64,000 nt of DNA, from the NCBI GenBank assembly GCA_964035545.1, contig OZ037766.1, forward strand, positions 4,888,722 to 4,952,721, written 5' to 3'. Below are positions 37,614 to 64,000 of the stretch, one piece after another (position 1 is the stretch's first letter; each line of letters opens with the position of its first letter). The position numbers were made by a program, and so were the translations under genes. Source of the stretch: Bugula neritina. Lineage: Eukaryota; Animalia; Bryozoa. A model generated the notes under the pieces. That model was given only the letters and a program-made list of their open reading frames with translations. It was not told where the DNA came from and did not search any database.

Positions 37614-38228
37614 TGTAACTTCTACCCCAGTTTATTAATAATAGGTTGCACTGCTGGAGTTTTGCTGATGTTTATTGAAACCAACTGGTAACCAACGTGA
37701 AACTACAATAATACAATTTAATAATAGAGACATTGATGACAAGAAAAATGAAACATAAAACATTACAAAATTGTTGCATAACAATGTTCAACATACCTCT
37801 ATTACCCTTTCTGGGGAGAGTTAAAGTTAAATATGTAAGGTTGTAATAGTGAAAGTTTAAATATCTCCATGTATCATGTACAAAATCAAAAATGACTTGT
37901 GAGAATTACAACATTCAGTGGAGAAAAGCATCAGACTGGCATGAAGGCATAAAACAACTCAGCTGCTATAATTTCTGGCTACAAGCTATAAAAAGCTGAC
38001 AGCTATTCTGGTAGCAAAAATCATTGCATTGTAATAGTGAAAACAAAGCTATCTGTGGTTTAAAAAAGCTGTGGCTAAGTGAGTAGCTAAGTGAGTAGAT
38101 AAATGAGTATATGGGTGAATGGTGATGAATTGTCCTGTGCCACTGCAAGTGATGATTTGAATAGATTGAGCAAAAGTTAATACAATGTAGTAGTGTGTAA
38201 TATAATAAGGAATGATCAAAACGCTACA
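37614..38228 (-). repeat. 3' LTR of the decayed BEL/Pao element
   Basis: TGTAAC...CTACA; direct repeat of 40958-41574. Confidence 0.9.
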
Positions 38229-38849: not shown

Positions 38850-40957
38850 TGTCGTTTATCTGATGCATTTTGTTAACAGCTTCGTTTTTCTGGGTTTTAC
38901 TGTTAATCTGGTTTTATGGTGGGTTGCTTGTTTGAACCATTGGATGTCGCTACGTTTCTGGGGTATTTATGCATTTTGTGAAGAGAAGTTGGGTGCCTTT
39001 CTTTGCAGGTGTTACACACAGCAGGAGATTCACATTCCTTGGCAATGTGGTTACCATCTAAACAGGCATAGCAAAGGTGTTTGCCTCTGATGAACTCATG
39101 AGCTTCGGAAAATGGCGGAAGGTTTAGCTTCCCACAAACAGCAGTTTTGTGATTGTCCATTTTGCAGAATATACATGCATTAATGTGTGCCTTAAGTTGC
39201 TGTGGAGCAACTTCAATTTGCTGTGTAGCAAATGTCCTCTTTGGAATTACAGGTTTTTAATGATGTCTTGAGTTTTTGTTTTTGCTTGTGTGTTTGATTC
39301 ATGGAGAACTTTTGACAATGAATTTCGAGCTATATCGCAGTGGTGTGATAAAAATGTTATAAACGTTTTTAGAGGAGAAAATCTTCCAGTCTCTCTTTCT
39401 AATCTGATAGACTCGTCAGCCCACCTTTCTCCGATTTGATGTGGAATTTTCAGTATTAACCTTTTATTGGCTGCTTTCGTATTGAGGTTGATGTCTGCAT
39501 CGAGACCATCAATGGATTCCAGTAAATCAATAAAATCTTCTAAAGCTTCTGCATCTCTTTGGTTTATTTTTGGCCAGTTTTGGAGTTTCTCTAAGTATGC
39601 CTCTGTTATTTTTTTTCCTTTCCCGTATCTGTCATCTAATTTAGCCCAGGCTGCCTCATATGAGTGTTCTGTCTTTTGTCTGTAAAGACCTTGGATGGCT
39701 TTGTGAGCTCTGCCATCTACAAACTGTCTTAATTTTAACCATTTTTGTCCGGCTGAGCTTTTTGAGAGGTTAAAAGCCTCATTGAAGGCCGCCTTCCAAT
39801 CCTGGTATTCCAGAGGATCGCCCGAAAACATGGGGGGGTTCTGATGGGCGTTGCCTAACTAGGTTGATAGCTTCAGCGTAATCGTCAGGTGTGAAGGCAG
39901 GTTGCTGTTGATAGCTGGGGTTAGTAATAGGGCTTTGATAAGTAACCTGGGGAACATTGCTTGAGAGCTCATTGGACTGTAAAAAAAGGGTTTGTGAATG
40001 GTAGAGGCATTGTGAACTGTAAGAAAGGGTTTGTAGATGCTACAGGTGTGGTTGGAAGAATGCGAGGTTGCATGATATTTTTAGTCATAGGCTGAGGTGT
40101 GTGAATGATGGGTTGAGGTGGAGTAGCTGGTATGATGGATGGCAACTGATTTAGAAGGAAAGAAAAGCTGTTCTTCTCTTTCTCTTCTTCAATGGCTTGA
40201 GCTATGACTTGCTCTTCAGCCTCTGCTGCGTCTATTTCAGTCTGAAGCTCTTGCTGCTTGATAGCGTTTGTAAGTTGACTGGCTTGCTGTCGTCACTCAT
40301 GAACTATATTGGCAGATTCTAATTTCTTTCTTAGTTCGGCTGCTTTAGCTTTGGATTGCACCTGCATTAATCTTAGCTGTGGCTGTGAGCTAGCAGGATA
40401 TGAGTGACTGGATGAAGCCGATTTTGAACTAACAAAATGACAGCAGATCCTAAGATCTCAAAGCGCTGATTTTCTTCTGCTGGCTCGAAGCCAGCAGTTT
40501 TTGTTTTAGTTGAAATTTTACTCATTTGATCTATGGCATCACCAATCAATGTTTCACAATCAGAATGCAATCTATCCATTTGATTTCGGACCTGGAGATC
40601 TGGCTCATGGTCTCCTAGCATGAGACGCCACTCATCATAAGTTCCCTCTAGATTGTGTTTAACTTGAGATAGTTGGTTTTTATAACCTTCCAATGAGTCG
40701 TACGAAATATCCTGTTTTGATGCAAAGTGTAAAAATATAGATTTGTGTAACTCAGCACAGTTTGTGATTTCATTGTCTAGTTGTGCAGCTTTCTGATTAA
40801 TTTTTGTTCTTGAAAATAAATGGGGTTTTGTTTGTTTTCTGGGTTGATTCTTTGAGTACTCCACTTCAAGGCAATGAGTTGCAGCAGGATTTGTGTCTTC
40901 TTGGTTTTGGCAGCAACTGCACAGAAGTGGTCTTTTCGATAGTAGGTAGAGTTTCAC
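38850..40957 (-). pseudogene. BEL/Pao gag remnant, frameshifted
   Basis: ORF pieces 40373-40957, 39247-39831 and 38903-39160 are similar to the intact Gag (EPDLQVRNQMDR vs EPDLKVRNQIDR; FSGDPLEYQDWK vs FFGEPLEYLDWK). Confidence 0.85.
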
Positions 40958-41574
40958 TGTAACTTCTACCCCAGTTTATTAATAATAGGTTGCACTGCTG
41001 GAGTTTTGCTGATGTTTATTGAAACCAACTGGTAATAACATGAAACTACAATAATACAATTAAATAATAGAGACATTAATGACAAGAAAAATGAAACATA
41101 AAACATTACGAAATTGTTGCATAACAATGTTCAACATACCTCTATTACCCTTCCTGGGGAGAGTTAAAATTAAATATATAAGGTTGTAATAGTGAAAGTT
41201 GAAATATCCACATGTATCATGTACAAAATCAAAAATGACTAGTGAGAATGACAACAGTCGGTGGAGAAAAGCATCAGACTGGCATGAAGGCATAAAACAA
41301 CTCAGCTGCTGTAATTTCTGGCTACAAGCTATAAAAAGCTGACAGCTATTCTGGTAGCAAAAATCATTGCATTGTAATATAGTGAATACAAAGCTATCTG
41401 TGGTTTAAAAAAGCTGTGGCTAAGTGACTAGCTAAGTGAGTAGCTAAATGAGTATATGGGTGAATGGTGATGAATTGTCCTGTGCCACTGCAAGTGATGA
41501 TTTGAATAGATTGAGCAAAAGTTAATACAATGTAGTAGTGTGTAATAAATATAATAAGGAATGATCAAAATGCA
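40958..41574 (-). repeat. 5' LTR of the decayed BEL/Pao element (outer end eroded)
   Basis: Direct repeat of 37614-38228; ends AAAATGCA instead of AAAACGCTACA. Confidence 0.85.
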
Positions 41575-53765: not shown

Positions 53766-54747
53766 AAATCTAAGCTGTTGTAAAATTAGAATAAATAAAT
53801 ACGCCATGCACTGCATGTTTGCGCTCTTATATTTTAAGACTTTTTATATACCTACCTGCTAAATCTAAACTTTAAAAATGAAAAGTAGAAAAAACAATAT
53901 GTAAATTGATCTTCAATTTATTAAATATTAACTTAACTAACTTGCTTAGATAAACTGCTATCTATTTGATTATAATATAAGCCAGATTTTGAAAAACTGT
54001 ACATGACGAGGGTTATTTACTGATGATTGATACAAGACATGCCTAACTAGATATAAGGCTAGATCTATTTAGAAATTTATATAGTTTTTAGTAGTGCTTC
54101 TATAGTTCCAAAAATATATCATATTTTTATTCTTAATTTAATTTTAGCTAAAATATTAGTCAATTGTTTTTTAAATCATATTTTTGTGTGCATTTCCAAC
54201 TCATTATTTTATACAAATGAATCTAAAGTTTTATATAAAAGAAAGCTGTATTTGCATCTAGTAAAACAAAGTTGTACAATCATGAAGTATGTTTTGTTTC
54301 AATAATATAATAAACTGATTTCAAACTAGATGTCATATTTTCATCAAAGGATTATTATTAAATGATCGTTATTGAAACAGCTACTCTGTTGTGTGGTTTA
54401 GGTCACTTTAATTTCTCCTGTTAAGCTTGCAGTTCTGATTTTTCGGTACTAGTTTGTCTGTTGTGTAGTTTAGTTTGTCTGTTAACAAGCAGTGTATAAC
54501 TAAAAGCTGTAATTTTGTCACAAATTATGCAGATGCCTATATTCAGTTTTTTTGGCAATATAGCAACACACCACATCACACAATATAATATTTTAAGACA
54601 TAATATAATATAATGTTATATATAATATGATACAATATTAAACTTAACTTTCTATCTATAGGAATTAGCAGTGGAATGAGATTCATTACATAAGTTGCAT
54701 TTTTAATAAATTTGAGTTTGTTCGTCAAATAAAAAAAGAACTTGTAG

Positions 54748-55530
54748 TGTAACTGCCCTCCTAGTTTGCTATGAAAGTTCCATACGGGTGTATGTTTTAG
54801 TGTAGATAGTTTATTGATTTACACTGTTCACACCATTTACACCTTTTACACCGTGAAACTACAATTTTCACAAAACAAAATGATTAAAATATGATAGAAT
54901 AAGAGCAAATTAAACACAGAAAAGTACATAAAAGAATTTGATAAATTGCTTGTTTTATAATTATTAAAATATTCAAAGTAACAGTATAAATCAACAAAGT
55001 TATAATATATAAAAGCATACCTCTTTCACCCTTTCTAGGAGAGAGTTAGTAGTATAAAGAAAGCAACATTTTATACCGTGTGTTTGTAAAAATAGCTATA
55101 ATATTATGTGAGAGTAGATGAGAATGGAACCTTGACGCTTGAGGGTTCTTACGATAATGTCCTGGCTAAATGTATTTTAACTGTTTTTGTCGGCATGTGT
55201 AAAGCTAGTGCACTCAGTTTCTTAGTCATGGTTTTTTGAGTGCAGCCAGTGCAAAATAAAACTTGCAATGCACCGAGTGATACTAAAATGGTCTTGAAGA
55301 TAAAAAAAAACAGTGACAAACAAGTGCTAAAGAGTACACTAAGGATGGGTGATTCATCGCTGTTGGAATATGTGACAACACAAACGCAGTGTGGCAATGT
55401 CGGTAAATGCTAAATTGCTAATTGATATATATTATGACAGTTATGAACAAATTGGCAGCAGAGTGTCAGTAAGCAAACTAAATAAAACCAAATTTATGAA
55501 ATTTTACTATTTATTATAAAGGACACTACA
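54748..55530 (-). repeat. 3' LTR of the intact BEL/Pao element
   Basis: Direct repeat of 62753-63535. Confidence 0.97.
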
Positions 55531-55604
55531 CTCCCACCTAAAATTTCAGAAATTTTTCAGCAAAGTTTTACTCGTTATCCTTTAAATACATATGTATATA
55601 TTTT

Positions 55605-58600
55605 TTAGTTTTCAATTAGTGTCACCAGCTTTGAGACAGGGCGGTGTAGGTACTTTTTGGAGTTCACAGGCTGGTTTCTATTACCAATTAAAATTTTGGC
55701 TGATCGGACTCTACCGTCTTTTGATTTTATACATTCTACCACCTTTCCCATAGACCACTCATTTCTATTACCATTGTCATCCACAATAATCACTATGTTT
55801 CCGGTCTTCATTTCTCGGCCTGTTTGATTCACCCATTTCTGGCGAGATTGGAGATAGCACAAATACTCAGTGCGCCAACGCTGCCAGAAGTTATTTGCCA
55901 GATGCTGCACCGCACGCCAGCGCTTGCGGCTGTAAATATCACTGTCAGTGAATTCAGATGGAGGTGAAAGAATGATGTCTGACTTCATAGTCAGCAGGAG
56001 ATTTGGAGTGAGAGGATGATGCTCTTCAGTGACTGTAGAGAGGGGCCTCGAATTTATGATAGCCATAACCTCATACATGAGGGTTCGGAGGTTACTGGTG
56101 TCGAGTCTTCCAGCATGTTTTCTCAGAACATGTTGAAGTATGCTTCTGGCTGAACGGATCATCCTTTCCCAGACGCCACCCATGTGACTGGCTGCAGGTG
56201 GGTTTAGCTTAAACTCCAGGACACCTTTCTCAGTTAATTCAGGAATAGCGCCAATGAAGTTGGTACCCTGGTCACACCAGATTTCTCTAATGGGGCCGCG
56301 AATAGCAATTACGTTGCGAATGGCATTTATGAAGGAAGAAGTAGTCATGTCATCAAGTACCTCGATGTGGACCGCTCGACTGGCCAAGCAAGTGACCATT
56401 AGACCATAACGTTTCAGTTCAGTGCGTCTATCCTTGACTTGGAAGGGGCCAAAACAGTCGACTCCACAATAAGTGAAAGGGGGTGACTCTGTAACTCTTT
56501 CTGCAGGAAGTGAAGACATATTTGGAATGATTGGCTTACCGCGATCACGACGGCAGTCCACACAATGATAGATGAGAGAGGTAACTAGCTGTCTAGCACC
56601 TATGACCCAATAACCAGCTGATCTCATTTGAGCTAGGGTCATTCCACGACCTTGATGCTTAGCCTGGTTATGGAAGTGCTGAAGAAGAAGTTGGGTAAAA
56701 TGTCCGGCCTTGGGAAGGATGATTGGGTGTTTGTTTGAGAACTCAATGAATGCGCTATGATCGAGTCTACCTCCAACTCTCATGATACCCTTTGAATCAA
56801 GGAATGGGCTGAGATTGAAGATAGGGCTGCTTTGACTGATTTTCTTGCCATCTTTCAGGCATTGAGCTTCAGGAAGATGCTCCTGTTGTGCAGATTTGAT
56901 GATGTATGATTCAGAGGCAGATTTTATATCATAAGAAGTGCTTTTCATGTGCTTAGAGCGTGCTTTCTGAATGAATAGTCCTGTCACTTTGACAGCTGTC
57001 GTCCAGGAGGAAAAGCGATGGAGCAAATGATAAAGTGTTGGATGGGTGGAGGTATCATGGGTTGAAGTAACAAGTGACTTGACCTCTTTGTCATCATTTC
57101 TAACTTGTGGGGTTGGCTGCTCAGGGATTACTATCGGTTCATTCCAGAGAAAATCTGGTCCCGTGAACCAGTTGGATTTGTTTAGCTGATCAATGGTCAG
57201 ACCTCTTGAGGCATGGTCAGCAGGGTTCTGGTCTGTTGGTACGTAAAACCAACTTTCTGGACATGACTGGTCTCTAACCTTTTGGATTCGGTTTGTGACA
57301 TATACATGGAACTTCTTTGAGGTGTTTTTGAGATAGCCAAGTACAACTTGAGAATCAGTCCAAAATGTTTCAGTGACATCCATTCCAAGTTCTGACCTAA
57401 TAATGCCGGATACTTGTGCTGAGGTGACTGCTGCTTGCAGTTCCATGCGGGGGATTGTGATGGGTTTGATTGGAGCTACTCGACCTTTACTCATGAGCAA
57501 GGAAACATTGACTTGGTGCTTGGCATTGACCACTCTCAAGTAGCTGACTTCACCATAGCCATCTGTACTGGCATCGGAGAAATGATGAATTTCTGCTTTG
57601 GAGATATCACCGAAATCATGTGGTTTGTAGCATCTCTTGATGTGGATGTTGGAGAGATCGGACAGAGAAGATTTCCAGCTCTCCCACCGTAATAACAGTT
57701 CACCTTCTAGGGTTGCCTCCCATGAAGCTGAAATTCTACACATATCTTGGAGTATATTTTTACCCTTCAAAATGAATGGGGAGAGGAAGCCTAAAGGATC
57801 AAATATGGATGCAATGGTAGAGAGAACACCTGAACGAGTGTTAGGGTTTGACTTGATGGATGAGCTGAATGTGAAAGCATCAGATTTGAGTGACCACAGA
57901 AGACCTAGAGTTCTTTCAATGGGTTGAGAATCATCATCAGGCTCAAGAGTTTGGATGTCTTGCACATTTCTTTCAGAAGCGGGGATAGATTCGAGAACAG
58001 CAGATGAGTTAGATGAGAATTTGTGAAGACGTAAATTGCCTTCTTGGCATATGGATATGGCGTCTTGGACCACACTAATTGCAGAGTCAGTATCAGAGAA
58101 ACTCATTAAACCATCATCTACATAAAAGTTGTTTCTGATGAACGATTTAGCAAGTGTGTTTGGGTTGATGCTAGTGTCACAGAGTGACCGCAAACCGTAT
58201 GTTGTGCATGCGGGGGATGACGTTGCGCCAAAGAGATGCACTTTCATTCTGTAAGGAACTATCTCTCCCTGTTCGTCATACCAAAGAAACCTGAGGAGAT
58301 CTCTATGTTCAGGAAAAACCCGAAACTGATGGAACATTCTACCAATGTCACAGGTTACTCCTACCAGGTCTTTCCCGAATCTCATCAAAATACCTATCAA
58401 GCTATTCATTTGATCAGGACCCTGGAGCAGATAGTCATTGAGACACATCCCTCCCACCTTGGCGGCTCCATCAAAGACAATCCGAATTTTTCCAGGTTTC
58501 TTGGGATGGTAAACACCAAAGTGAGGGATGTACCATGCGCTCTCATTGTTTTTCTGGTCATCTGGAACAAGTTCTGCCTCACCTTGTGTTATGATGTCAT

Positions 58601-61600
58601 TCATAAATTTGTGATAGTGCTCAGAGAAAGTAGGATTAGTTAAATTTTTTTGAAGATTTTTGAATCGATTGAGTGCCATGTATTTAGATTTGTTCGGACC
58701 GGGTTGAGATTTTAGTGGAAGAGGCATAGTGATGTGACCTTCTACATCTTTATATGTTTGCTCTTTCATGAGTTTCAAGAAGTTGATGTCATCGATTGAC
58801 ATCTTTGAATTCTCATTTGACGGATCTGAATCAAAGTCAGAGCTTAGGATCTTAAGGATTTTGGTTTCCAGGTTGGCATCTTCATTGTGGCTGTCTGCCT
58901 GTATCTTAAATGAGATATTTTCTCTGGTTGTGGGTTGTAAGACTGCAAGGTTTACTATCGTAAGCAAATTACGGGGGTTCTTTTGAGTATTATTTTGTGT
59001 GGTATTTCCCATGAGTAGCCAACCAAGATCACTCAGCCTAGCAAATGGCACATTGTCACCAGCAGTAATTTCTTGCCGTGACATGAATACTTGTGGCAGA
59101 TTGCCACCAATGAGGAGACCGAGAGTGAGCTGGTTGCCTTCTTTGGCAGTGATGAATTCAGAAGCAAGGTGACGTAGATGGGGCCAGTCCTGTACGGACA
59201 TGGAATTAGGAATTTCATTGCGATTGAAGGGTATTTGTGACTGACTAACACAAGTTGGCAGCTTAATATACTTTTGTCTATTGTAGCCGCGGACTAACAG
59301 CCCAGTTGCAGCTTGTCTGCTGGATGTAGACCCTTGTACATCTGTGAGGGTGCTGATATTCATGTCCGTATCATGAGTAGTGGCGTTGAGTGCATGAATA
59401 GTGTCGTGAGTGATGAATGTGTGATTAGAACCAGAGTCTAATAGAGCATAGACTAGGACTTCATGGCCAGGATTTTCTATTGATGATACATACACTGGAA
59501 TGGTCCATGAGGCAAGGTTTGCTGGCCTATTTCCGGCGCAGTTACGTGCGGTGGCTTGTGTTGGATTATTTTCGTTGCCTTTATTGGAGGTTAAGTTTTG
59601 AGTGGAGGACTTATTTTCGCTGCCTCGAATTTGATTATGTGAAATTTTATTTGGTTGAGAGGTCTTATTTTCGCTGCCTCTATTGTAATACTTATGGAAC
59701 ACAGCAAGATGTTTTTGCTTACAGTCTTTTTTAGTGCACGTCGCAGGGTGGCGACATTTATCCATTTTGTGTCCCGGCTTCGCACATGAATAACAAAGGT
59801 TGTTATTGTCAAATAATTTCTCTATGTCTGAATGAGGTAATTTTTCAAGTTTGAAACAGATGCCAGTGCCATGGTTGTTCATGTTACACATCAAGCATGG
59901 GTACCTACGCATAGGTTTTGTGGTGTCATGTGATATGTTGGCTGTTGTAGCTTGATTTTCTGAAGCGAGAAATGCTGTTGCCTGCTTTTCGGACTTGCGA
60001 GTAGGTTGATTCCGCCTATAGCTGTTATCATGGTTTTTATTTGATACGACTCTTTTGGCTATGGCTTTGTTTAGACTGTTGCTTGCTACATCAGCTTCTT
60101 TAGACAAGAACCGAACAAAATCAAATATTGATGGAAACCGATCTGTTGCTGATTCTATTTCAGTTGCTATTTTGACCCAACGATTGCCTACCGATATTGG
60201 TAATTTAGCGAGAATTTTCTCGTTTTCTCTTCGATCATTAAGGCAGTTGAGTTCAGGAAGCTTGTTCATGGCGGTTTGGCAGGATTCTAGAAAATTGACT
60301 AGTTCTTCCAGTGCCTCCCCGTCATGTTCTTTGATAAGGGGCCACTGTTCCAACTGGGTCCGATATGCTTCAGTGAGTATGTGGGGTTTCCCGAATTTAT
60401 CATTTAGCTTGCGTTTTGCTTCTTTAAATGCTTCTTCAGTTCCAATTTGGAATAAATTTGCTACTACTCGTTTAGCTTTACCACCTAAATATTGTTGAAG
60501 GAGAGCTATCTTTTGGAGGGGATTGTAACTACCACTCTCAATGAGACCCTCAAATGCCACCTTCCAATCCAAATATTCGAGGGGTTCACCAAAAAATACA
60601 GTGGGCTCGGCAGGTTTTAGTTTGATTGTGTGAATAGCTTGTGCTAGTGTGTTAGCAAATGCTTGTTGATCAGAAACGGAGCTGATGTTCCATGGTGGAG
60701 TGACGTCTACAGGGCTCCTTGTAGGGTACGAAGTGGAGTCAGCTGGTGCCTGGTAGAGCTGAGGGTTGGTAATAGGATGTTTAGTCTGAGTCCTAGGTGC
60801 AGGTACTGGAGGCATGATAGAAGGTTTGACTGGATTATGGGTTTCGACATTTAAATGTTTAAAGTTAGGTGCAGGTGCTGGAAGTACAATAGAGGAAGAC
60901 TTGGCTGGATTATCGAGTTCGGCATGTGATTGTGTGAAGTTAGGCTGGGGTAGTGGATGAAAAAGTGAAATACTGCCTTCATCTTCCATAGCCTCAGAAA
61001 GAACCTGTTCTTCAGCTTCAATGGCATCAAGTTCTGCTTGAATTTTGCTTTGCTCTATAGCCATTGCCAATTGTTTGGCTTGCATTTCTAGTGCATGAGT
61101 GCTTTTTGATGACTCAAGTTTCTGTTTGAGAGCTGCAGATTTTGCTTTAGCTTCCAACTGCATAGCTTTAATTTTTGAACTAGCACGGGATGATTTGGAA
61201 GCTGAGGTGAGATGGGATCGAGATTGAATTGAAATGACTGAACCTGATGGGTTACGTGGTTTAGACAGAAAAGCAGCTGATGATGCGCCTGGTTGGTTTG
61301 ATAAAGCAGTTTTAGAACGCGTTGTATAGACATGCATCAGCTCTAAGACTTGTTGCAGACAATTTTCATTATCTGCTCCTACGCGGTCAATTTGGTTTCT
61401 GACTTTTAGATCTGGTTCAAGATCGCCACAAGCTTCGCGCAATTGTTCATAGGCCTTGATTACATTGGCCTTCTCTTCAATAAGCTGCGTCTTTAAACCT
61501 TCTAAAGTCTCAAACGATATCTCTTTATGTGAGGAAAATTCCTTACTTATGAACTGATGAAACACACTGCAGTTTTTTAGTATCTCTTTTAATTTATCTG

Positions 61601-61781
61601 CCAATAGTTTGATTTCAATACGTTTAGCATGAGTTGGATTGTCTTCATGTATCTCAACATGTCCTTGTGTGGGTTGAATTTCCTGTTCTAATGTCTCGTA
61701 ATTTTTGGCTGACGAATTTTGGTCAAACTGAAAAGTGTCACTAATTGCAGCATTTTCTGATTGAGTATTTTGTTTATACAT
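55605..61781 (-). CDS. BEL/Pao Gag-Pol polyprotein (~2058 aa from the first ATG)
   Basis: Uninterrupted ORF: Gag with three CCHC knuckles, protease LLDSGS, RT (YIPHFGV..KIRIVFD, FGATSSP, FYVDD), RNase H (HHFSDAS, IPRMELQAA, FWTDS, NPADHASRG), HHCC plus DDE integrase (GVDCFGP, CDQGTNF, GGVWERMI). Domain order PR-RT-RH-IN with Pao-type motifs. Confidence 0.97.
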   Translation of the reverse strand: MYKQNTQSENAAISDTFQFDQNSSAKNYETLEQEIQPTQGHVEIHEDNPTHAKRIEIKLLADKLKEILKNCSVFHQFISKEFSSHKEISFETLEGLKTQLIEEKANVIKAYEQLREACGDLEPDLKVRNQIDRVGADNENCLQQVLELMHVYTTRSKTALSNQPGASSAAFLSKPRNPSGSVISIQSRSHLTSASKSSRASSKIKAMQLEAKAKSAALKQKLESSKSTHALEMQAKQLAMAIEQSKIQAELDAIEAEEQVLSEAMEDEGSISLFHPLPQPNFTQSHAELDNPAKSSSIVLPAPAPNFKHLNVETHNPVKPSIMPPVPAPRTQTKHPITNPQLYQAPADSTSYPTRSPVDVTPPWNISSVSDQQAFANTLAQAIHTIKLKPAEPTVFFGEPLEYLDWKVAFEGLIESGSYNPLQKIALLQQYLGGKAKRVVANLFQIGTEEAFKEAKRKLNDKFGKPHILTEAYRTQLEQWPLIKEHDGEALEELVNFLESCQTAMNKLPELNCLNDRRENEKILAKLPISVGNRWVKIATEIESATDRFPSIFDFVRFLSKEADVASNSLNKAIAKRVVSNKNHDNSYRRNQPTRKSEKQATAFLASENQATTANISHDTTKPMRRYPCLMCNMNNHGTGICFKLEKLPHSDIEKLFDNNNLCYSCAKPGHKMDKCRHPATCTKKDCKQKHLAVFHKYYNRGSENKTSQPNKISHNQIRGSENKSSTQNLTSNKGNENNPTQATARNCAGNRPANLASWTIPVYVSSIENPGHEVLVYALLDSGSNHTFITHDTIHALNATTHDTDMNISTLTDVQGSTSSRQAATGLLVRGYNRQKYIKLPTCVSQSQIPFNRNEIPNSMSVQDWPHLRHLASEFITAKEGNQLTLGLLIGGNLPQVFMSRQEITAGDNVPFARLSDLGWLLMGNTTQNNTQKNPRNLLTIVNLAVLQPTTRENISFKIQADSHNEDANLETKILKILSSDFDSDPSNENSKMSIDDINFLKLMKEQTYKDVEGHITMPLPLKSQPGPNKSKYMALNRFKNLQKNLTNPTFSEHYHKFMNDIITQGEAELVPDDQKNNESAWYIPHFGVYHPKKPGKIRIVFDGAAKVGGMCLNDYLLQGPDQMNSLIGILMRFGKDLVGVTCDIGRMFHQFRVFPEHRDLLRFLWYDEQGEIVPYRMKVHLFGATSSPACTTYGLRSLCDTSINPNTLAKSFIRNNFYVDDGLMSFSDTDSAISVVQDAISICQEGNLRLHKFSSNSSAVLESIPASERNVQDIQTLEPDDDSQPIERTLGLLWSLKSDAFTFSSSIKSNPNTRSGVLSTIASIFDPLGFLSPFILKGKNILQDMCRISASWEATLEGELLLRWESWKSSLSDLSNIHIKRCYKPHDFGDISKAEIHHFSDASTDGYGEVSYLRVVNAKHQVNVSLLMSKGRVAPIKPITIPRMELQAAVTSAQVSGIIRSELGMDVTETFWTDSQVVLGYLKNTSKKFHVYVTNRIQKVRDQSCPESWFYVPTDQNPADHASRGLTIDQLNKSNWFTGPDFLWNEPIVIPEQPTPQVRNDDKEVKSLVTSTHDTSTHPTLYHLLHRFSSWTTAVKVTGLFIQKARSKHMKSTSYDIKSASESYIIKSAQQEHLPEAQCLKDGKKISQSSPIFNLSPFLDSKGIMRVGGRLDHSAFIEFSNKHPIILPKAGHFTQLLLQHFHNQAKHQGRGMTLAQMRSAGYWVIGARQLVTSLIYHCVDCRRDRGKPIIPNMSSLPAERVTESPPFTYCGVDCFGPFQVKDRRTELKRYGLMVTCLASRAVHIEVLDDMTTSSFINAIRNVIAIRGPIREIWCDQGTNFIGAIPELTEKGVLEFKLNPPAASHMGGVWERMIRSARSILQHVLRKHAGRLDTSNLRTLMYEVMAIINSRPLSTVTEEHHPLTPNLLLTMKSDIILSPPSEFTDSDIYSRKRWRAVQHLANNFWQRWRTEYLCYLQSRQKWVNQTGREMKTGNIVIIVDDNGNRNEWSMGKVVECIKSKDGRVRSAKILIGNRNQPVNSKKYLHRPVSKLVTLIEN

Positions 61782-62738
61782 GGTTGACAAAAAGAAATAG
61801 CAAAATGTGTGAGAATTTAGTGTTGAATATCTTGGCGTGAAAACACAACTCCTAATTAGTTTTTTGAAAATATCGAATTTCTGGTCAGTTGGCTTACTGT
61901 CACAAAGCGCACAATAAATTCAAAGATAGCACGCGTAACCACAGTAGGCAAGGAAAATCGTAGTGCGTTGACTGTTAAATTATTGCTTTGACCTAGTTAT
62001 TGCCCGGAATGTAAACGCAGCACGCTGTGTTGTCACTATTACAACAGCGATGTTACAGTAATAAAGAGATAGAACAAATGAAAATAAAGATGCTCACTAA
62101 TAGTAATTGTGATATGTGAATGAAAAGTTATAATTAGCTTGAGAGCTATGTAAAATTTGGTAGCTATGTAGTACAAGAAGTAAATTGTGGTTAACTAGGA
62201 CAATGTGTCAATTGGGTAAAAACCTTATACAGTATAGATATAATTAAACTTATCGCTCTGGAGTCTTGTTGGCTGCTGGCTCTGGCTCTTGGCTCTGGCT
62301 TTGTAGCTCTGGCTCTTGGCTGACTGGCGCTGGCTCGGTACGACTGTATAGGCTGATAGTTTGGCTATCGTTCGACTGCTGGTCAGTTTTCCCCGGAGAC
62401 TGTATGCCTGATTTGGGTGAATTGTGGGTTGAGTTGTTTAACTTGGGTTTGGTGTGCTTGTGCTTATCGTAAGTGATGAATGAGAATTTACTCTGTGCAT
62501 GAGGATAGAAGCATTTCACATTAGAGTATTACGTGCTGTTTTGGATTAAAGTTGTGGGAGCTTGATGTAAAGTGGAAAATCAAGGTTCAATCATTTGAGT
62601 GTAAGTAGGTTACAGTTTCGCTTGTCAGCAGCAAGTGGGAAGTTTTACTTGCTGTCTTAGGTTAAAGTTCCACTTCGTGAGAGCTAAGAGTCTAACACTT
62701 GTCAAAGGCAAGTGGGAAGAGTTTCACTTTAAGTTTTA

Positions 62739-62752
62739 GGTAAGAGTTTCAC
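62739..62752 (-). other. Non-tRNA primer-binding-site position, GTGAAACTCTTACC
   Basis: Abuts the 5' LTR end (TTACA) with no TGG. The decayed element has GTGAAACTCTACC at the same position (40957-40945). Confidence 0.7.
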
Positions 62753-63535
62753 TGTAACTGCCCTCCTAGTTTGCTATGAAAGTTCCATACGGGTGTATGT
62801 TTTAGTGTAGATAGTTTATTGATTTACACTGTTCACACCATTTACACCTTTTACACCGTGAAACTACAATTTTCACAAAACAAAATGATTAAAATATGAT
62901 AGAATAAGAGCAAATTAAACACAGAAAAGTACATAAAAGAATTTGATAAATTGCTTGTTTTATAATTATTAAAATATTCAAAGTAACAGTATAAATCAAC
63001 AAAGTTATAATATATAAAAGCATACCTCTTTCACCCTTTCTAGGAGAGAGTTAGTAGTATAAAGAAAGCAACATTTTATACCGTGTGTTTGTAAAAATAG
63101 CTATAATATTATGTGAGAGTAGATGAGAATGGAACCTTGACGCTTGAGGGTTCTTACGATAATGTCCTGGCTAAATGTATTTTAACTGTTTTTGTCGGCA
63201 TGTGTAAAGCTAGTGCACTCAGTTTCTTAGTCATGGTTTTTTGAGTGCAGCCAGTGCAAAATAAAACTTGCAATGCACCGAGTGATACTAAAATGGTCTT
63301 GAAGATAAAAAAAAACAGTGACAAACAAGTGCTAAAGAGTACACTAAGGATGGGTGATTCATCGCTGTTGGAATATGTGACAACACAAACGCAGTGTGGC
63401 AATGTCGGTAAATGCTAAATTGCTAATTGATATATATTATGACAGTTATGAACAAATTGGCAGCAGAGTGTCAGTAAGCAAACTAAATAAAACCAAATTT
63501 ATGAAATTTTACTATTTATTATAAAGGACACTACA
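62753..63535 (-). repeat. 5' LTR of the intact BEL/Pao element
   Basis: Direct repeat of 54748-55530; sense-strand AATAAA at 62819-62814. Confidence 0.97.
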
Positions 63536-64000
63536 TGTAGCAATGACATTGAATTTCAGAAATACTTTTATTCCCATGCTTATGCTTATACTGTTCATAC
63601 ACACAACATTGATTTCCATAATTTAATAAATATATAGGCCTATCCCACAAAATTACTTTGCCTAGTTTTTAAAAAAAATATTATTTTAACAAAACAGATG
63701 GCACTTTTTACTTGGCCAACAGTTAAGACTGAGATCTTATTATTTTCCGTCAACTGCTCTACAAAGTTTACAATAATTATGTTAAAAAACTGAAACATAT
63801 ATATTACACAATAAAGGGCAAAGTGAAATAATGTTTACTTCTATAAGTATACCTCAAAACAGTTCTGCTGTGTTTAGTATAGAAATATTGATCAAAACTG
63901 GTGGAGTAATTGTTATTTAACGTGACAATCTAAAAGACTTTGAGTTCTACAGAGAGGTTGTTAACAGCTCTGACTGGCATGTCTTTTACTTCTTTATTTT

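Follow-up and report, generated by a model that had tools for sequence, protein, structure and literature searches.

What primes reverse transcription in an LTR retrotransposon that carries no tRNA-type primer site beside its 5' LTR? The question is raised by an element in the window, by which we mean the whole 64,000-nt stretch of Bugula neritina DNA analysed here. An earlier note on this stretch had proposed that the element makes its own primer, by splicing an intron out of the LTR transcript and cleaving the RNA after TTTCAC, and that a second family in the window shares the layout. The features of the first element (family 1), in window coordinates, are the following.

54748..63535, minus strand: complete BEL/Pao element, family 1 (LTR pair and flanks read directly)
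54743-54747 and 63536-63540: 5-bp target duplication TGTAG flanking the element (flanks read)
62753..63535, minus strand: 5' LTR, 783 bp, identical to the 3' LTR
63074..63080, minus strand: TATAAAA box (read from the sequence)
63026..63052, minus strand: predicted exon 1, ~27 nt (start site inferred, no measurement)
62864..63025, minus strand: LTR intron, 162 nt, GTATG...TTGTAG, exactly absent in some LTR copies
62858..62863, minus strand: start of exon 2 (6 nt, TTTCAC), forming the putative primer's 3' part (complementarity read from the sequence)
62822..62857, minus strand: four 9-nt repeats (GGTGTAAAN-like), filling the gap from the proposed cleavage site to AATAAA
62815..62820, minus strand: poly(A) signal AATAAA
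62756..62769, minus strand: U5 end CTAGGAGGGCAGTT, complementary to the start of exon 1
62742..62752, minus strand: primer-binding site GTGAAACTCTT, beginning at the first base past the LTR end ..GTTACA
62717..62727, minus strand: second tandem copy of GTGAAACTCTT (25-bp duplication)
55605..61790, minus strand: Gag-Pol open reading frame, 2061 aa
55531-55539, minus strand: polypurine tract AGGTGGGAG, just upstream of the 3' LTR in the element sense
54748..55530, minus strand: 3' LTR, 783 bp

Membership of BEL/Pao is met by the TGT..ACA LTR ends, the 5-bp duplication TGTAG, and the tract AGGTGGGAG. The polyprotein matches the Pao peptidase (PF05380, 1.2e-44), followed in order by DUF1759, DUF5641, and Integrase_H2C2, with the integrase placed after the reverse transcriptase, and its nearest proteins all have the same domains, the best named ones coming from Watersipora subatra (63% identity). 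Within the LTR, the donor reads ..GTGAAAGAG/GTATG (last base of exon 1 at 63026), and the acceptor, preceded by a T-rich tract, reads ..TTGTAG/TTTCAC (first base of exon 2 at 62863). When the exons are joined, AAGAG, the last 5 nt of exon 1, supplies the 5' part of the putative primer, and AAGAG+TTTCAC is an exact 11-nt complement of the primer site, versus 8 nt for the unspliced LTR. The repeats at 62822..62857 are likely, judging from the sequence, to be the start of R; the number of 9-nt units varies from at least 2 to 6 among family-1 LTRs (L015, L017, L018, L023, and L025; partly counted by eye), as expected for slippage during strand transfer within R. We also observe that the primer-site segment is tandemly duplicated (25-26 bp) both in family 1 (window 62717-62752) and in another family of this genome, family D (L064, ~2178-2230), and that the family-1 variant L015 has a single primer-site copy.

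The second element of the window (family 2) has LTRs that are 95% alike and is internally deleted.

40958..41573 (approximate), minus strand: family 2 5' LTR; exon 1 ends at 41140, intron 41046-41139, exon 2 from 41045
40947..40957, minus strand: family 2 primer-binding site GTGAAACTCTA
37614..38224 (approximate), minus strand: family 2 3' LTR; exon 2 start still TTTCAC

Its layout is that of family 1, with a donor GGGTAATAGAG/GTATG, an acceptor TTGTAG/, an intron of 94 nt, and a junction, TAGAG+TTTCAC, that is the complement of the 11-nt GTGAAACTCTA. The 5' LTR copy reads TTTCAT versus TTTCAC in the 3' LTR copy, a CpG to TpG change after which a terminal G.U pair remains. The last primer base C sits in a CpG, and the C to T change has occurred independently in several copies (41040-41045; L021/L022, ~2008-2013; L028; L071, ~2648), one copy of the TTTCAT type being a sea-urchin element with identical LTRs. 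On direct reading, the coordinates, primer-binding sites, donors, acceptors, and intron lengths (162 and 94 nt) that had been claimed for the two elements all held, as did the 11-nt spliced versus 8-nt unspliced match in the intact element, the recurrence of the layout in the second family with its 5' LTR copy mutated to TTTCAT, and, for element 1, the presence of AATAAA downstream of the junction (62820-62815).

With respect to removal of the intron, querying all 216 Mb of the genome with the family-1 LTR returned copies whose matches to LTR positions 1-510 and 671-783 directly abut, and the intron is exactly missing in copies L021, L022, L023, and L025. The intron-less family-1 loci, three in number and of different ages, read ..GGGTGAAAGAG fused to TTTCA(C/T)GG. 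One intron-less element is complete, with two identical 619-bp LTRs, a 2105-aa open frame, and a target duplication (ATTAT), and is therefore the integrated cDNA of a spliced RNA; its primer site, GTGAAACTCTTTC, holds 13 nt of primer complement versus 11 in the window copy. In a further family, H, at least eight intron-less LTRs were read, and three elements have both LTRs intron-less with a contiguous junction that still matches the 12-nt primer site, so propagation is not stopped by intron loss. These three elements lie at C2:24646680-24652300, C6:1025097-1030700, and C3:21528017-21532704 (L075-L085), with ~5.6 kb between LTR junctions.

Public Logan contigs from four runs of three studies (two of the runs labelled RNA-Seq) join 63026 directly to TTTCAC, and one of the four also contains the unspliced form. 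The Logan data are contigs whose RNA nature is unproven and which give no start sites, ends, or strand, and the junction contigs are weaker support because the intron-less DNA copies in the genome could be their source; some runs containing the element are listed under 'symbiont metagenome'. Family-1 LTR copies retain donor and acceptor down to 77-81% identity (77-95% across both window families), and the donors read are GTATG, GTAAT, GTAAGT, and GTGAGT, with GT..AG intron ends. Based on the exact intron-less copies and the junction contigs, we conclude that the LTR intron is a genuine spliceosomal intron that is precisely removed in vivo and, based on the intron-less element with its target duplication, that spliced element RNA is reverse-transcribed and integrated.

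A search with the Pol region recovered many BEL/Pao families with intact frames in this genome, and in seven further ones, whose Pol is 29-54% identical to that of family 1, we read the 5' region. For these families, B to H, LTR ends were set by the ..ACA/GT motif (and, for family C, also by an inverted LTR copy), and 3' LTRs were not part of the analysis. A junction-type primer site is found in 8 of the 9 BEL/Pao families of this genome, with a spliced match of 10-13 nt and an unspliced match of 5-9 nt. The exon ends and the bases past the LTR in six of the additional families are as follows.

Family B: ACAAG + TTTTCAC; bases past the LTR GTGAAAACTTGT
Family C: ATAAAG + TTTTTAC; bases past the LTR GTAAAAACTTTAT
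Family D: AAAGAG + TTTTTAC; bases past the LTR GTAAAAACTCTTT
Family G: TAAAG + ATTTCAC; bases past the LTR GTGAAATCTTTA
Family F: CAAAAG + ACTTCAC; bases past the LTR GTGAAGTCTTTTG
Family H: CAATATT + GGTAC; bases past the LTR GTACCAATATTG

Family H gives 12 nt spliced versus only 5 nt unspliced, and it also met a blind prediction, as its donor and acceptor were read first and the primer site, retrieved afterwards, matched. The misfit is family E (L066, C7:14951685-14954285), which has only 7 contiguous complementary bases plus 2 beyond a 2-nt bulge; its donor is GCAAGAG/GTGATT, its acceptor ..ACAG/TTTCACC, and its bases past the LTR GTAAGAAACTC, with only one intact copy seen.

Outside this genome, the layout is present in 7 of 7 elements from six other species, located through the protein database and having introns of 133-521 nt: Watersipora subatra (two families), Lytechinus variegatus, Apostichopus japonicus, Glandiceps talaboti, Astyanax mexicanus, and Acanthochromis polyacanthus. 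Splicing gains just 1-2 nt over the unspliced match in the fish and acorn-worm (Glandiceps) elements. Overall, spliced-junction complementarity reaches 10-13 nt in 15 of 16 elements (introns 94-521 nt), the complementary site begins at the very first base past the LTR in every element, and the acceptor is similarly placed in 15 elements, 77-178 nt from the LTR end. As a separate observation, the 10-nt junction-type site of the Acanthochromis element (L089, ~2906-2935) is followed by ..CGCCCAACGT, 12 nt from the LTR and without TGG, which we take to resemble part of the retroviral tRNA-Lys primer site.

The pairing covaries between elements. In a 13 x 13 table of junctions versus primer sites from 7 species, the own site is the best match for all 13 junctions, and in a permutation test on the 13 elements the observed sum was reached in 0 of 50,000 permutations. 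Exon-1 bases covary with the distal primer-site bases in each of the 13 elements tested. Matches were counted by joining short exon-end strings (<=37 nt), and as a control for chance, shuffled versions of each primer site were run against all GT..AG combinations of the LTR it came from. A match of at least the observed length arose in 4/500 shuffles for family 1, in 0-2/500 for families B, C, D, G, F, and H, and in 0-1/500 for Watersipora L070 and Apostichopus. The weaker elements are less clear of their controls (Lytechinus 2/500 with wobble allowed, Watersipora L088 3/200), and Astyanax and Glandiceps gave 58/500 and 16/500, respectively, in runs where the LTR end was overshot by 1-3 nt.

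Two aberrant insertions, candidate by-products of reverse transcription, bear on what was paired with the primer site. In family H, the full-length copy on contig 5 carries the 12-nt site and then the gag start. The contig 8 copy shares with it the intron-containing LTR and the 12 nt, after which come 16 further bases that continue the exon 1 complement and are not in the normal family-H leader, so that the stretch comprises 28 nt complementary across the exon-exon junction (23 nt of exon-1 complement joined to exon 2); the element then resumes ~350 nt further in, with a deletion. The LTR adjoining the stretch keeps its intron, and the 28 nt were therefore not copied from the DNA of that LTR. 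We infer from the sequence that this copy fits a scenario in which plus-strand synthesis ran on into a primer of spliced RNA and the second jump was then misplaced. That the 28-nt match could be the normal family-H site is excluded by the contig 5 copy, where the normal site is 12 nt, and the contig 8 copy is thus aberrant. The second case is an old family-1-like fragment (C2:31149031), in which an LTR end and GTGAAACTCTT are followed seamlessly by the exon 1 complement and ~100 nt of upstream LTR. It may have arisen by read-through of a longer RNA or by snap-back of intron-less DNA, and under either origin we infer pairing of the primer site with the spliced junction. No further read-through copies turned up in families 2 and B when 22-23-mers were searched as hypothetical patterns.

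A second helix can form between the 5' part of exon 1 and the final 15-25 nt of U5, stopping 3 nt short of the LTR end, and its complementarity is seen in 10 of 13 elements (-15 to -22 kcal/mol, z ~-1.9 to -4.5, with compensatory changes). In the window it pairs 63052-63040, the first 13 nt of exon 1, with 62756-62769. The pairing covaries, reading CCCCAG/CTGGGG in family 2 and TCTGG/CCAGG in Watersipora; we also note the helix at L070, L071, L072, L073, L074, L062, L063, and L068. The exon-1/U5 and primer/primer-site helices cross and must therefore form a pseudoknot or act as alternatives (a switch). In the minimum-energy fold of a natural intron-less leader, the junction is paired with U5 and the primer/primer-site helix is absent. 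The exon-1 helix has its first base 28 nt downstream of a TATAAAA box, and from this spacing we predict, in the absence of start-site data, that transcription starts near 63052 and that the primer is ~30 nt long.

Taken together, we consider it likely that these BEL/Pao (Belpaoviridae) elements prime themselves in a Tf1-like manner with a primer assembled by splicing, with cleavage, transcription start, and action in cis or in trans all being inferred. Transcription would begin ~25-35 nt upstream of the donor within the LTR. A GT-AG intron of 94-521 nt, lying wholly within the LTR, is removed, and the last 3-7 nt of exon 1 and the first 5-7 nt of exon 2 are joined into 10-13 nt exactly complementary to the bases after the LTR. 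This joined stretch would anneal to the site, and the RNA would be cut after the conserved ..AC and before G, presumably by the element's RNase H, by analogy with Tf1; the proposed cut position is always after ..AC and before G, mostly GGTG, and in family 1 falls after 62858. The new 3' end would then be extended through U5 and a short R, which would start at the cut and run to the poly(A) site and in family 1 would carry the 9-nt repeats. Progeny would keep the intron if the template's 3' LTR is still unspliced when copied, or if spliced RNA primes unspliced genomic RNA in trans, and a spliced template would yield intron-less progeny, such as are observed.

Against this reading, there are no direct data on the RNA 5' end, on cleavage, or on RNA attached to strong-stop DNA, and the model explains neither the escape of the 3' LTR intron from splicing nor the recruitment of a primer acting in trans. 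The unproven RNA origin of the junction contigs, the misfit of family E, the gain of only 1-2 nt in the fish and acorn-worm elements, the minimum-energy fold, and the crossing of the two helices also count against it. A bolder reading, for which we regard the evidence as evenly balanced, is that splicing-dependent self-priming is ancestral and standard across a large clade of BEL/Pao elements that spans bryozoans, echinoderms, hemichordates, and fishes, with the LTR intron serving as a switch, such that unspliced RNA would be an intact capped message and spliced RNA would be cut and reverse-transcribed.

The rival that survives best, though we hold it to be unlikely, is that the complementarity serves folding, dimerisation, packaging, or splicing control and that another primer is used, which cannot be excluded. 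In its favour, the predicted fold of the spliced leader prefers other pairings, and a second conserved helix exists. Against it, minus-strand synthesis has to start precisely at this site if the LTR end is to be made, nothing else that could be a primer site is seen beside it, and the two insertions show that polymerase copied across the primer site into the spliced exon.

We find it very unlikely that the primer is instead a short unspliced one, with transcription starting at or near the acceptor ..AG/TTTCAC, the first 8-9 nt priming as in Tf1, and the donor being unrelated. Most elements do have an anchored 8-9-nt match without splicing, the gain from splicing is only 1-2 nt in the fishes and Glandiceps, and start-site data are absent. 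However, the unspliced match of family H is 5 nt versus 12 spliced, the exon-1 covariation with distal primer-site bases (13/13 tested) is left unexplained, and the exon-1 complement in the contig 8 copy extends for 23 nt and is joined to exon 2. In 10/13 elements there is also pairing of exon 1 with the U5 end, and the TATA box lies 28 nt upstream of exon 1.

There is similarly very little room for a host RNA (a tRNA, a tRNA half, or another small RNA) as the primer, with the LTR-junction match being secondary. tRNA priming is what the ICTV profile gives for the family (PMC8742986), a tRNA-Tyr site has been reported for Achilles (PMC4580426), and our search of the genome for tRNAs (RF00005) scored only 63 of 18,702 candidates and so does not exclude a tRNA. 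Against a host RNA, the primer sites differ from family to family, each matching its own LTR, and none starts with TGG, the starts being GTGAAA, GTAAAA, GTACC, or GTCAAA. The family-1 11-mer is not enriched in the genome (201 matches versus 311 for a reversed control), and the nine exact copies of a family-H 20-mer (the reverse complement of the natural stretch L069:11-30) are eight intron-less LTR junctions and the contig 8 primer site, with six matches of 1-2 mismatches left out. Finally, chance similarity in AT-rich sequence was tested and rejected and is all but excluded: under a loose GT/AG rule shuffled AT-rich sites occasionally reach 11-13 nt, but shuffles reach the observed value in only 0-4/500 cases in the nine elements with correctly placed LTR ends, the layout recurs in 15 elements, and permutations gave 0/50,000.

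Returning to self-priming by a spliced primer, every part of the earlier interpretation that could be tested on sequence held. The inference of splicing is supported by the intron-less LTR copies, one of them integrated with a target duplication, and more weakly by the junction contigs. The suggested check for covariation between primer site and junction was run, and covariation was found across 13 elements from 7 species, while the check for spliced 63026/62863 reads yielded the junction in contigs of 4 runs, with RNA origin unproven. The alternative that had been offered, an unspliced primer with transcription starting at AGTTTCAC, failed for family H and does not explain the exon-1 covariation. 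No host tRNA source was found by the 11-mer count, the RF00005 survey being partial (63/18,702), and cleavage after TTTCAC remains inferred, by analogy with Tf1.

Self-primed reverse transcription is established for Tf1/Tf2 of Schizosaccharomyces pombe and the Tf1/sushi group (Levin and co-workers; PMC5443660, PMC3601003). As in Tf1, the elements described here have no tRNA site, their own 5' RNA (10-13 nt here) complements the sequence immediately past the 5' LTR, a 3' end has to be generated by cutting the RNA (a cut that is inferred here), and extra RNA pairing involves U5. Unlike in Tf1, where the transcript's first 11 nt serve uninterrupted as the primer, the primer here is split by a 94-521-nt intron and is complete only after splicing, and it would lie ~20-30 nt inside the RNA, preceded by ~20 nt of exon 1 sequence, given the inferred transcript start. 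Furthermore, Tf1 is a Ty3/gypsy chromovirus, whereas the present elements are BEL/Pao elements of animals, and the two helices here are in permuted (crossing) order. The two helices of Tf1 are nested.

Within the family, the 2021 ICTV profile of the Belpaoviridae names host tRNA-Arg or tRNA-Gly as the primer and describes replication as "poorly understood" (PMC8742986), and a tRNA-Tyr primer site is reported for Achilles of Bactrocera oleae (PMC4580426). The elements studied here share with tRNA-primed Belpaoviridae the superfamily, the gene order, and the position of the primer site beside the 5' LTR, but the site of the latter is an 18-nt complement of a tRNA 3' end, whereas here there is no TGG-type site and the complement is to the element's own LTR. 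In cqgypsy_1 of Culex, tRNA copies after the 5' LTR are a by-product of primer read-through (PMC3286476). The aberrant insertions described above are alike in that extra primer sequence was copied past the primer site, revealing the identity of the primer, and differ in that the extra sequence is the element's own spliced exon 1 and not a tRNA. Deltaretroviruses (HTLV-1, BLV) have a functional splice donor in the R region of the LTR, with the acceptor far downstream and subgenomic mRNAs as products; here, by contrast, donor and acceptor both lie in the LTR and splicing yields a match to the primer site. In the full-text literature searched, which leaves out older subscription papers, we found neither self-priming nor LTR introns reported for BEL/Pao, and a primer site goes unmentioned in both a BEL/Pao survey and the Sinbad report.

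The data indicate that a widespread BEL/Pao clade primes with its own RNA, contrary to the ICTV summary, and fill a gap in a poorly understood replication cycle. Assembly of the primer by splicing, if correct, would couple host RNA processing to the initiation of reverse transcription in a way undescribed for any retroelement in the literature searched, and if the bolder reading is true, these would be the first known retroelements that need the host spliceosome to build a replication primer. The model predicts a capped primer RNA of ~30 nt, a defined cut after ..AC, and loss of cDNA synthesis when LTR splicing is blocked. With respect to annotation, pipelines that seek tRNA-complementary sites would miss or misjudge these elements and would not anticipate introns within LTRs or intron-less LTR variants.

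Two further kinds of LTR variant were observed among family-1 and family-1-like copies. In L020 (C6:2735836-2736483), the LTR is truncated inside the intron and continues into GC-rich sequence unlike the remaining LTR. In addition, the clustered family-1-like LTRs L026, L029, and L030 (C3:1414807-1430858), which have no adjoining primer site, are missing ~50 bp including exon 1 and the donor and are possibly an LTR-derived tandem array.
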